A DNA stretch of 64,000 nt from Paragordius varius (taxonomy: Eukaryota; Animalia; Nematomorpha): contig OZ176051.1 of NCBI GenBank assembly GCA_964247055.1, forward strand, positions 4,774,001 through 4,838,000, written 5' to 3'. The notes under the pieces are model-generated. The model made no database searches, was not told the DNA's origin, and was given only the letters and a program-made list of their open reading frames with translations. Of the stretch, positions 1-46,629 are shown piece after piece. Positions within the stretch are counted from its first letter, which is position 1, and every line of letters begins with the position of its first letter. Both the position numbers and the translations under genes were made by a program.

Positions 1-290
1 TGGCTTTTGTTGCATCATTAAGTGCATATCCATAATTTTCAAGTTTGAGTTGAGCAAAACTTCTGTTTGCATAATATATGGCATTTTGCGGATCAATAGT
101 TAGAGCCTTATCATAATATTCTACCGCATGATTGTAATCCCCATCTAATTATAAAAAATCTTTAAATACTTTTAAAATAAAGATTTGCTTTATTTTTATA
201 ATCCTCGGCAAGATTTTTAGAGTTTGATTCGTCTTCGTTTTGTAAATCACCGTTTGCAAGATTTAGATTTTCCATACCCAAGTATACCAT
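1..290 (-). CDS. PPP5C: Ser/Thr protein phosphatase 5, N-terminal TPR region (partial; continues left of the window)
   Basis: Exons 290-170 and 144-<1 splice to MVYLGMENL...AEDYKNKANLYFKNGDYNHAVEYYDKALTIDPQNAIYYANRSFAQLKLENYGYALNDATKA, matching the PP5 TPR1-2 pattern (AEELK..AN.YFK..DY..A...Y..A....P.NAIYYGNRS.A.L..E.YGYAL.DA). Start could be ATG 290 or 275. Confidence 0.9.
145..169 (-). other. 25-nt GT-AG micro-intron (PP5 intron 1, phase 1)
   Basis: gtatttaaagattttttataattag; removal restores FK-N-GDY in register with the PP5 TPR; unspliced reading hits TAA. Confidence 0.85.
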
Positions 291-360
291 ATGTCAGGCA
301 GGTAAGTACCAAGGTAATAATGCTTAACAGATTGTAAAATTTTTATTCACAAAATTGATA

Positions 361-397
361 ATATATATATATATATATATATATATATATATATATC
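361..397. repeat. (AT)n microsatellite
   Basis: Direct reading; similar (AT)n runs near 35577-35592, 38982-39003, 42636-42664 and 56369-56403. Confidence 0.95.
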
Positions 398-527
398 CTA
401 ATAATAGAAAAACGTATCAGGATTATAAGGGCGATGGTATAAGCCCATAAGAGTGATTAAAAAAGGTTATTTAAATTTTTGTGGTAAACGGTCCACATTG
501 AAAAATGGCAAAATTTGAGCAAATTTT
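398..527 (+). mobile_element. Fragment of the ~1.15-kb Tc1/mariner-like non-autonomous family (family X)
   Basis: Matches the segments starting near 35597, 61230 and 62410 (tagaaaaatgtatcaggattatcatgg...gagtga...tttgtggtaa). Confidence 0.6.
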
Positions 528-42295: not shown

Positions 42296-42456
42296 ACCTA
42301 TGTTCATGTAAGTATTAATTACGTCCTTATGCTTAAATCCTTATGCTAATATCCTTATGCTTACGTCTTTATGCTTACATTTTTGAATAAAAATCATACA
42401 GACATCATAAGTCTGCTCCTCATAAGGACCTAAGTCATACTTACACGAACATGGGT
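42296..42456. mobile_element. Miniature internally deleted copy of the foldback element
   Basis: ACCTATGTTCATGTAAGTAT...(CCTTATGCT)n...ATACTTACACGAACATGGGT. Confidence 0.75.
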
Positions 42457-43462
42457 CTTCCTCTGATTCAAACAATACAGATACCAAGAAATATATAAAC
42501 TAATATTAAAAAGTCAGTTTTGAGAAAAACAATTGGGATGTATTGAAAGCGATTTTTCATTTTAAAACAAAAGACTACCAAATTTTTCTTAAATAATTTA
42601 TTATCCTATGTAAACTCTCCAAACTTTCTTCCGTCAAATATATATATATATATATATATATATATGGTATTTTTGAATTCTTACCAAACTAATAAACAAA
42701 TCATTATAATGATGGACAAATACATTTTATCATTTGAGATATACATAATTTTAATCTTTATTAACTTTACCCAAAACATGAACTTTTACAAGAGTTGTAG
42801 AATGTTTATTTAACGCTCAAGTAGGGTTATTACTAAAATTAAACTTCCCAAAATTAATAATTAATATAATTTATGCTTTTTTACATTTATTCACACGTTA
42901 AAAATTGAGTGTATGTATGGATATATTGGACACATGTATAAATTAGGTAATATGTACAGGTTAAGGGGAATAATAAATGATTAAATTTTTTTAAACAAAG
43001 GAGTTGCATTTTTCCAGGTATAATTAAAAAAATTTGGATAAAATCATTTGACACTTACATGTATGTATTTTAGCATTAAGTGATAATCAATCTGCTAGTG
43101 AGCTGGTTAAAAATTGATGGTAAAAAGCATTACGATAAAATATATTCAAGGGTATTAGTTTTTTCATGCATGCAGTGTTGGGTATCAATTTAATAGTATA
43201 ATTAAATAAAAATAATGTTAAAAAATTCAAATGCCACCCATAATAAATTAGAGGACACCAATATATATATATAATATAAAATTTTCTATGATCTAAAAAA
43301 CCCAGATAAAGAAATGGACAAAACAAACATAAAAATTACTACACTAAAGCCAAATTATAATATGGTTGTGGTGAAAGAGGTTAATATGGATTCTATACTT
43401 GGTATTATCATTATTATTATATTTGTCATAATAATAAGCGCGTTAAAAAGGCAAAAATGATG

Positions 43463-46400
43463 TTATGAATTATCCTTAATATATTCAACCATTACATTTC
43501 CAACGTTACCGAATTTGGGGGAGGAATACTTTGAGAATATGGTCTATAATATAAAATAATATAAAAATATTATTTTAACTAAGCTAAAATAAAGAAACTC
43601 GATGATTTTATTATGTAAAAATATAAGATGTTTACTTTGTATTGTGAGGTGGTTGTATATTTTGGCATATGTTTGACAAAATATTTCATAGTGTCCACCA
43701 AATCATCCACCGTATAATGAGTGTGATATTCTAACAAGTCATTCTACATTGATCAAGAAATATAATATATAAACACTTTAAATAAATAATGATTTGTTAA
43801 TTTTAGTTCATTAAAAAGATATATGTATAGATATAAAGTTAAACCTCTTTTCAACGAAAAAAAGGAATTAAAAACGAAATTACAAAACAACTTATTTTTA
43901 CATATTTAAATATTACAATCCATTTCCTTTAATAATTCAAATGTTAAAATCTAGCGCTTTAAAAATTTAGTTAAAATTTGAATTACAATTATTTTGGTAG
44001 TGCATACGCATAAAGAGTGTACCTATTAAAGCGAAAAGCACGCATAATTATTCTTTATAATAGTCATACTGAATACACATATATACGGTAGGATTAATAA
44101 ATGATTATCACGAAAAAACAAATGAATATCCAAATGAAATAAATGATTAACACACATGGTTAAAAAAATATGTAATAAATATACCATACTTGACCCTTGA
44201 TAAATATTTTCTGTTGTATCTACTGATATCTAACATATTTTTTTAACCATGTGATAATCATTTATTAAACTTACTGTATTTAAAAAAAATTTTTTTTAAA
44301 ACAAAGATATTACCCAAAGATCTTTGGGTATGTCATCGAAATTATTGATTTTTTTATCCATCAAATTGGCCATTTCTTTAAACATTTTAAGGCTGAGACA
44401 TAAAGCCGATGCCGCAATAAGAGATGCTTTCTTACTCAATATACTAGGGTCTAAAAGGGTCAGTTCAATCAAAAATTTTGACATGGTGTGTTCTTCATAT
44501 GATACCTGCGATTGGATAGTGCAATGAATAATTATAATAACTAGTTTTTTCACTGTAAAAAAATATTTTTTAGCAATTAATATTAATATGGATATATCTG
44601 TTTAAATAAGGATGCGGCAATTGAAAAAATATTTTACAAAATTAACATTCTTATTATATAAATTTTTGTCATTCGAATCGCAAATATGGCGTTAAGGGTA
44701 TAAATAGATTAAATCTTCAACCAGATATTTAACAATCTTATTAAGAATGAGAGATTTTTTTTGATCAAATTTAAATGCTTTTCAAAAATTACCACGTTCG
44801 CCTCAAGGTTTAAATTTTTTTTGTAATAGGTTGTAATAAAAATATTAACCTGTGCAATTTTTGAGAACCGTCTTAAAAATTGGATAGCATATGGGATTTT
44901 GAAATCAAAATCGATAATACGTAAAACATCAATTTCCATCGTTAGTATTTCTTGTGCCGTATAAGTATTTTTAGTGACATAGACAAAATCATTAACCTCC
45001 ATAATGTATAGCTCTTCAAATTTGCAAGCTATAAACATGGCAGTAACTCCGAGTAATTGTAAGTTTTTACGAGCAATTTTATCAACTTTCTGTGTTGCGT
45101 TAAAAAAAATGGTATTAAATATTTCTATTATTTTATCAATTTATTAAGAACTCGACTGAGGGGTGTTGGAAAATAGTTTTAGTGCATAGAAATGCATCAT
45201 TATATTAATTTATGTTATTTATCGAATTGTCAGAAAACTTCTAAAATTCCCAATTCGATAAATGCCAAAAATTATCATTTGTGTTAAAACATAAGTGATA
45301 TTTTCCTAAAATAAAACTCAAATTAACCCAAAAAGATAAAACGAAATGATAATTAGGTTCATGTAAAAAGTTGAAAAGGAGTAGGATATAGCAAACATTA
45401 GGAAGTTTGACAATTATTTTAATCATGATACCATTTATCCAATTACTCGATATGAAATTCACCCTTGGTGTTTTCAAAATTCCATACAATAGCTTGTCAT
45501 AATTTCAAAATTTGTGAAATATTTTCGTATATTGGAAAAATCTTACAACACTTTTAGGTTCTAAAATACGTTTAAAAAACGTTAGTGTGGCTATAATTTA
45601 AATTTTCTTATACATTATCAAATATATTTCGTAAAAATTGAGCTGGTTTTTTCCTTTATTCGTAATTGAGTTGAAACTAATTAATGGATAAAACTTTTTC
45701 ACAATTTTTACTAATTAAATTTCTAAAACCAAAAAATGCCAAAAACTATGTAAAGCAAGAAATGCCATGAGTGAACGGGTGATATTGGGAAAAATGAATT
45801 ATTCGCTGGAAAATGAAATGTTTTTTTGGATTCGATTGAATTATAGGCAAATTAGAATCTTATTTTATATGGTAATTTGATTGACTAGAAAACAGTTTGA
45901 ATGGGAAAATGTATAAAATGTGTAATAAATAAAACTAACCAAAATTATTTAAAAATTCTAATTTACTTGGATAATATAACGGTTTTATACACATTTAAAT
46001 TTGAAAGTAACAGACTGGTTATTAAATAAAACGAATACTATTTTACCTGTAGATATCGGTCGATAATGTTGGTTGTGAGGTAAAGTGTTTCAGGCAATAG
46101 TTTAAAATGTTGATGGATTTGAATTATCCAATCAATCAGAATTTGTCTCATATTTATTGTGAGATCAACACTTTTGATATAATTATCTTTAAGATCAATT
46201 TGAATTTCCTAAATATTATAATTTTATCGTAACTTCTAAATAAAATAAATAATCATAAATGTCTTTGGCATATACTGCTAATGCGATTTCATCGTTTATA
46301 TCGGCATTATCTACATCATACAAATCTTGTAGGGTTAAGGTAGAAAATGCTTTTAAGGGACTTAAACACTTTTGTTGTTCCTGTACGGTAGGTAAGGGTT

Positions 46401-46629
46401 TAATCGGCTGAGGTTCGATTTCAATAGAATCCTTTTTAATTTTTTTGATACCATTATCCTTTTTTTGAGCCAAAATTCTTGTTGCATTATTATTATTATT
46501 TAATATATTTTCTCGAGCACGTAAAGGTCTTCGCTTCTCAGGAACCATTATTAAGCCTTTTTTTAGATCCTATATGATTAGAATACATGTTACATCTTTG
46601 GAAGGTATTTTGGAACGCAAACTGTACAT
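43463..46629 (-). CDS. CCNB: G2/mitotic cyclin B, 384 aa
   Basis: Exons 46629-46594, 46569-46234, 46208-46047, 45089-44850, 44505-44314, 43743-43636, 43543-43463 (all phase 0, 1155 nt). D-box-like RRPLRAREN; YAKDIYDYL; cyclin box MRQILIDW...FKLLPETLYLT..IIDRYL; LQLLGVTAMFIACKFEE; FLRRFSK. Confidence 0.9.
44101..44262. mobile_element. Palindromic MITE (family Z) in a cyclin B intron
   Basis: aatgattaacacacatggttaaaaaaatatg...catattttttaaccatgtgataatcatt inverted arms. Confidence 0.65.
46209..46233 (-). other. 25-nt GT-AG micro-intron (cyclin B intron 2, phase 0)
   Basis: gttacgataaaattataatatttag joins YLFYLE to EIQIDL...MRQIL; alternative sites are out of phase or delete YAKDIYDYL. Confidence 0.88.
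46570..46593 (-). other. 24-nt GT-AG micro-intron (cyclin B intron 1, phase 0)
   Basis: gtaacatgtattctaatcatatag, ending in an in-frame TAG; joins MYSLRSKIPSKD to DLKKGLIMVPE. Not needed if translation starts at ATG 46548. Confidence 0.65.

Follow-up and report, generated by a model that had tools for sequence, protein, structure and literature searches.

Nine short segments in a 64-kilobase (kb) window of Paragordius varius DNA (contig OZ176051.1, positions 4,774,001 to 4,838,000, numbered here from the first letter of this whole stretch) are probably genuine U2-type GT-AG spliceosomal introns of about 21-28 nucleotides (nt), and would give this animal genome a short mode of intron length specific to its lineage. 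The window has a guanine-plus-cytosine (GC) content of about 28%. Six-frame reading combined with domain searches identified six genes in it, and the predicted genes and introns are collected in Table 1. The original prediction, made from the letters of the window, had proposed nine GT-AG segments; their coordinates, strands and lengths (25, 25, 24, 22, 28, 21, 28, 25 and 24 nt, in the order of the table) were all confirmed. It had also taken the DNA for that of an animal. The genes are indeed of animal type, among them an ALK/LTK receptor kinase, and since this kinase combines MAM, LDLa, glycine-rich and Tyr-kinase domains the genome is therefore metazoan.

On the coding strand, all nine segments have GT at the start and AG at the end, and retention of any one of them brings a stop codon within the segment or just after it (9/9). 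In-frame stops are present in all three segments whose length is a multiple of three, which is uninformative because of ascertainment bias. None of the nine contains the U12-type 5' motif (/ATATCC or /GTATCC) or the U12-type branch site TCCTTAAC.

Table 1. Predicted genes, candidate tiny introns and selected longer introns of the window.
Feature	Coordinates	Strand	Ends, junction or basis	Intron lengths (nt)
PP5 intron 1, 25 nt, phase 1	145-169	-	GT-AG; joins ..ANLYFK to (N)GDYNHAVEYY
ALK-like kinase second-last intron, 25 nt, phase 0	9019-9043	-	GT-AG
Nicotinamidase intron 1, 24 nt, phase 0, in-frame TAG	25819-25842	+	GT-AG
KRI1 intron 1, 22 nt, phase 1	34251-34272	-	conserved N-terminal exon to 38-nt exon
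KRI1 intron 2, 28 nt, phase 0, T-rich TAG acceptor	34185-34212	-	GT-AG
KRI1 intron 3, 21 nt (or 27 nt, to 33964), phase 2, in-frame TAA	33970-33990	-
KRI1 intron 5, 28 nt, phase 0	33260-33287	-	GT-AG
Cyclin B intron 2, 25 nt, phase 0	46209-46233	-	joins ..AKDIYDYLFYLE to EIQIDLKDNY..
Cyclin B putative intron 1, 24 nt, phase 0	46570-46593	-	12-residue first exon (MYSLRSKIPSKD) to exon 2
KRI1 38-nt micro-exon between two tiny introns	34213-34250	-	encodes (D)DNFILNSDHPQA
ALDH intron 1, 84 nt, second mode	47085-47168	+	joins ..ACERG to YLLNKLADL
Cyclin B last intron, 92 nt, second mode	43544-43635	-	joins ..TTSQYK to TIFSKYSSPKF..
ALK intron within MAM domain, 78 nt, second mode	16695-16772	-	joins ..FKNSSG to HFIYVAGAT..; MAM profile match
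KRI1 intron 6, 3,545 nt, LINE-like element inside	29669-33213	-	frame and homology continue into Kri1_C exons
PP5 phosphatase, first two exons	1-293	-	domain and six-frame reading	25
ALK/LTK-type receptor tyrosine kinase	~20400-7500	-	MAM, LDLa, ALK glycine-rich and Tyr-kinase matches	~20 introns >=78, plus one of 25
Nicotinamidase	25567-28211	+	domain and chain matches	24, 1384, 517
KRI1, 380 amino acids, compact	34369-29040	-	Kri1_C and homologue alignment	22, 28, 21, 303, 28, 3545, 243
Cyclin B	~46630-43470	-	Cyclin_N, cyclin B1 chains	24, 25, 957, 344, 570, 92
ALDH	46802-54500	+		84, 292, 1267, ~879, 674, 309, ~1520, 1075

For each site we enumerated every GT-AG pair within 120 nt that keeps both flanking reading frames open. 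The earlier claim that several of the introns are forced by protein conservation held for 145-169, 25819-25842 and 46209-46233, where the alternatives delete conserved residues. At 145-169 the downstream PP5 exon matches PP5 chains and begins at position 15 of the 34 positions of the TPR profile; the remaining GT-AG solutions remove TPR residues. At 25819-25842 residues 4-73 of the 84 encoded by exon 1 correspond to positions 96-161 of the nicotinamidase 9u8m chain, and exon 2, from its residue 3, corresponds to positions 176-213. The two exons thus end and start at about positions 172 and 174 of 9u8m, so that the junction is continuous to within about one residue, and the alternative introns of 111 and 117 nt remove the WHPxDH region. 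At 46209-46233 the downstream cyclin B exon matches Cyclin_N from about profile position 10, as well as cyclin B1 chains, and the alternatives lose at least 14 conserved residues including the start of the cyclin box. Searches of the PDB that used only the short ends of the upstream PP5 and cyclin B exons gave no matches.

Similar constraints were observed within KRI1. Only two solutions, of 21 or 27 nt, join the conserved frames of 64 and 124 amino acids (aa) that flank 33970-33990. All solutions at 33260-33287 that retain the DDDFE..LERLIK motif are 31 nt or shorter, and the alignment to the KRI1 homologue P0011 crosses this junction with one gap of a single residue just after it. The product of removing 34185-34212, ..SDHPQA followed by IDRELQNTLSLLKEKNPVIY, aligns to P0011 without gaps, and this segment is well supported as a candidate tiny intron. 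Overall, removal of the segment restores the frame and an uninterrupted homologue match at 145-169, 25819-25842, 46209-46233, 34185-34212, 33970-33990 and 33260-33287; the same test is not decisive at 9019-9043, 46570-46593 and 34251-34272. Judged by reading frame and homology, the case for a candidate intron is compelling at five to six of the nine.

In the window, which is the only one analyzed, about 45 introns were modelled, 36 of them firmly placed; approximately nine further introns of ALK and ALDH were placed only roughly and are all longer than 90 nt. When the 36 lengths are sorted, nine values of 21-28 nt are followed by 78, 82, 84, 92, 93, 111 and 149 nt and so on up to 1384 and 3545 nt, and no intron of 29-77 nt is present among them. 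Our independent gene models therefore reproduce the gap above 28 nt that had been noticed earlier, with the next intron at 78 nt and a maximum of 3,545 nt. The lengths below 100 nt form two narrow modes, 21-28 nt (n = 9) and 78-93 nt (n = 5), with nothing between them, and the second of these seems to lie near 85 nt. Nine of the 36 placed introns are shorter than 30 nt and the median intron of the window is about 240 nt. That the short GT-AG class stands beside ordinary and kb-scale introns, as had been stated, is best seen in KRI1, which has introns of 22, 28, 21 and 28 nt together with one of 3,545 nt. In the same gene, the first 35 nt of the 243-nt intron 7 (29503-29537, - strand) run from GTATGT to an acceptor, TTAATTAG, which could be a short alternative acceptor and has no frame or homology support.

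The tiny introns cluster at the 5' ends of genes. Six of the nine occupy intron position 1 or 2, vs about 11 of 45 introns overall (hypergeometric P = 0.003), and eight lie within the first five positions, the exception being the ALK intron near the 3' end. Their 5' splice sites also appear modestly weaker than those of ordinary introns: the match to the U1-complementary consensus is 4.8 vs 5.9 of 9 (p = 0.03) and G is found at exon position -1 in 2/9 vs 18/27 (p = 0.05), both contrasts being biased upward because the boundaries of ordinary introns were chosen partly by consensus. A GTA or GTT start, a TAG or CAG end and a T-rich 3' part are common to both classes.

Contigs of four public runs (X1, X3, X4 and X5) were compared with the window over 29000-34999. 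All four runs are DNA-like, with even depth across exons and introns and with unspliced contigs. The X1 contig covering 34008-34449 spans the tiny introns unspliced with zero differences, other contigs from X1, X3 and X4 are likewise unspliced, and no joint that skips a tiny intron was found in the contigs of the four runs over this region. Single-nucleotide polymorphisms (SNPs) inside tiny introns were observed at 33277/33278, at 33980/33984 (other individuals) and at 34195/34196 (X3); none of them changes the length and all leave GT and AG untouched. The sole indel listed in KRI1 unique sequence falls within the 303-nt intron. Since the DNA runs carry the segments unspliced, assembly error is not their source, and in these samples no elimination from the DNA takes place; the possibility that the KRI1 segments were assembly artefacts, which independent reads had been proposed to settle, is thus ruled out by their presence in the DNA contigs. 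The runs X4 and X5, which represent one sample from another individual, differ from the window by SNPs at a few per cent, and two haplotypes are visible at 33828-33977; X1 is identical to the window. The pattern suggests that heterozygosity is high or that a divergent population has been placed under the same species label.

From the genomic sequence we infer that the tiny segments are excised from RNA, and in which mode they would be recognized. For each of them the ordinary spliceosome would presumably use intron definition, with recognition across the intron, and this would work despite the weaker matches at the 5' splice site; the same genes would also bear the narrow mode of 78-93 nt and long transposon-filled introns. 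Several observations weigh against such a reading of the nine segments. The RNA runs under the species label contained none of the sampled words of either region, the four runs examined over the KRI1 region were all DNA-like and gave no spliced joints, and the protein collections searched contained nothing from this genome or its close kin that could serve as cDNA evidence. A yTnAy motif whose A lies 5-13 nt before the 3' end, as expected for a branch site, occurs in 4/9 segments, which is not above shuffles (P = 0.6). The contrasts in splice-site strength rest on nine tiny introns and on ordinary boundaries that were partly chosen by consensus. Finally, three of the nine sites (9019-9043, 46570-46593 and 34251-34272) have viable in-frame alternatives. 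At 9019-9043, which lies five codons past the end of the Tyr-kinase profile and joins reading frames of 143 and 280 aa, acceptors for introns of 52 or 61 nt keep the frame likewise. Exon 2 of cyclin B encodes a Met of its own shortly ahead of the D-box (RRPLRAREN), and 46570-46593 could be a coding intron, an intron of the 5' untranslated region or no intron. The segment 34251-34272 is not forced because a single intron of 98 nt, 34175-34272, is also in frame.

These alternatives could be explained by a class that is real with several of its nine members mis-drawn, which is quite possible and falls only a little short of probable. The segment 9019-9043 would then belong to an intron of 52 or 61 nt, cyclin B would have no coding intron at 46570-46593 and be translated from exon 2, and in KRI1 34251-34272, 34185-34212 and the 38-nt exon between them would be one intron of 98 nt. 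It is at exactly these places that in-frame GT-AG alternatives exist and that the flanking protein is poorly conserved, and the three KRI1 pieces add up to 22 + 38 + 28 = 88 nt, inside the second length mode of 78-93 nt. On the other hand, the acceptors of the tiny introns are T-rich TAGs vs purine-rich alternative acceptors, the 98-nt intron deletes three residues, 'IDR', which are aligned to conserved KRI1 positions, and the other five sites have no such alternative. The 38-nt micro-exon itself aligns with the segment preceding a conserved helix in P0011. A further explanation, that the segments stem from assembly errors, pseudogenes, DNA elimination or ribosomal bypassing, is very improbable: the segments are identical in the X1 contigs and present in X3, X4 and X5, the joined form is absent from DNA contigs, five different conserved genes are affected, and their reading frames are otherwise intact and long for the base composition. 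In addition, GT-AG ends are found in 9/9 segments vs a chance of about 0.25% per site in DNA of 28% GC.

An early spliceosome that is modified or reduced might deal with the tiny 5'-proximal introns, leaving ordinary introns to the standard route; we regard two such separate pathways as unlikely. The two narrow length modes with an empty interval between them, the 5' positional bias of the tiny class, its weaker U1 complementarity and its fewer G at -1 speak for this arrangement; on the opposite side, both classes share the same start, end and T-rich 3' part, the tiny class has no distinctive motif, and flatworms are bimodal without a demonstrated second machinery. If two pathways did exist, which we doubt, the spliceosome would sort introns into two discrete substrate classes, each with its own route of early recognition. 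One would comprise introns of about 25 nt close to the cap, whose pairing with U1 is weak and in which no branch or polypyrimidine signal can be recognized; the other would be the ordinary introns of at least 78 nt. On this doubtful reading, a second-mode intron whose middle turned into an exon could leave two tiny introns behind, as the 22 + 38 + 28 = 88 nt of KRI1 would illustrate. The original prediction of two recognition regimes with a compact spliceosome footprint is speculation, and one spliceosome with a low length limit fits equally well.

Introns of this size have been described in a few lineages. The list of precedents in the original prediction omitted myxozoans (PMC13644364) and flatworms (PMC4040987). 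According to a 2026 survey of 51 animal genomes, introns below about 30 bp are confined to myxobolid myxozoans and Dicyema; Nematomorpha are not mentioned in that survey (PMC13644364). In Dicyema japonicum and the myxobolids Henneguya, Thelohanellus and Myxobolus intron length has a median of 22-27 nt, and transposable elements (TEs) are scarce in their compact genomes (PMC13644364). The window resembles these in having candidate GT-AG introns shorter than 30 nt, of a kind overlooked by standard gene finders, in an animal of a parasitic lineage; dicyemid and myxobolid introns have reduced splice-site motifs, which the tiny introns of the window may share. Unlike in dicyemids and myxobolids, only about a fifth of the introns of the window are tiny, the median being about 240 nt, the same genes contain kb-sized introns filled with TEs, and no introns of 29-77 nt lie between the two classes. 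Neither a median intron below 30 nt nor a compact organization with few TEs, two of the marks of shrinkage of the dicyemid and myxobolid type, was found in the window.

For two modes within a single genome, parasitic flatworms come closest. Gyrodactylus salaris has intron modes at about 32 and 58 bp (PMC4040987), and tapeworm introns are also bimodal as reported there with reference to Tsai et al. 2013 (PMC4040987). The flatworm short mode prevails at intron positions 1-2, alongside introns of up to 20 kb, and a modified splicing or export machinery has been speculated upon (PMC4040987). Flatworms and the window thus have in common two narrow modes below 100 nt with a long tail and the location of the short mode at positions 1-2; the modes differ, being about 25 and 85 nt in the window vs a flatworm short mode of about 32-36 nt, and flatworms belong to Lophotrochozoa vs a probable ecdysozoan as the source of the window. 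For the ciliates Paramecium and Nyctotherus, introns of about 25 nt are described in PMC5014332. They are similar in length to those found here, AT-rich and bounded by GT-AG, with in-frame stops in those whose length is a multiple of three; unlike in the window, all introns of these ciliates are tiny and their genomes gene-dense (PMC5014332).

Our literature search found no paper linking hairworms with introns. The preprint on the genome of the hairworm Gordionus reports 26.9% GC, 63.8% repeats, annotation with STAR and BRAKER and 71.6% metazoan BUSCO completeness; the word 'intron' is absent from it. The window most likely shows genuine tiny spliceosomal introns in a 5'-biased short mode, which would be a new lineage for a known kind of feature. 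If confirmed by RNA, this would be the third animal lineage with introns shorter than 30 nt and the first in which tiny and kb-sized transposon-filled introns share pre-mRNAs. Very short introns would then not depend on a compact genome, and a single organism carrying both tiny and ordinary introns would allow the lower length limit of an animal spliceosome to be studied. The minimum intron length in common aligners and gene finders is about 20-40 nt, and at such settings tiny introns therefore become frameshifts or truncated gene models. Were two recognition routes to exist, default minimum-intron settings would systematically truncate the gene sets of the phylum, and some of the universal-gene loss reported for it would be an annotation artefact.

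The repeat-rich nature of the DNA, which had also been asserted, was borne out by word depths of 10 to 3,000 times single-copy over parts of 29800-35000. A long interspersed nuclear element (LINE)-like element with reading frames at 29879-33056 (+ strand) lies inside KRI1 intron 6 and shows a depth 10-100 times that of its flanks. Reverse-transcriptase fragments were found inside a nicotinamidase intron and at 60259-61047. LINE-like and other repeats occur both within introns and between genes. Open reading frame (ORF) 1 of the LINE of the window is not on record in the protein collections, and the best database identity for its ORF2 is 38%. Just upstream of the KRI1 start, 34400-34999 is a very high-copy repeat; in each of the four runs its word depth is about 2,000-3,000 times that of the single-copy DNA nearby, with many joints and loose ends. 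Another repeated element (frame fragments ..FLHGVGPNWGPN..) occurs at least three times, at 3400-6050, 22447-22675 and 35807-36262; at 3400-6050 it is present in tandem-like copies which make up the highest-GC stretch of the window.

Searches with single exons were limited by a length filter of 0.55-1.75 times the query, at which such exons cannot retrieve full-length models. Under this filter, an exhaustive search of representative proteins with the KRI1 C-terminal exon found relatives no closer than 44-62% over short stretches, and a word-index search with cyclin B exon 2 gave no match. The KRI1 model has 380 aa vs 600-800 aa in most homologues; it retains the N-terminal motif and Kri1_C and is without the long acidic and serine-rich inserts. 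An Rfam search of the window returned zero matches. In ALDH, the 3' end of the exon reaching to 50298, together with its GT donor, has three further copies inside the next intron of 674 nt on the + strand (50435-50469, 50539-50600 and 50687-50748; 64-87% identity; region 50246-50748). The cyclin B (-) and ALDH (+) genes are arranged head to head across 46594-46802, with start codons approximately 130-170 nt apart, and the interval between them is probably a shared bidirectional promoter.

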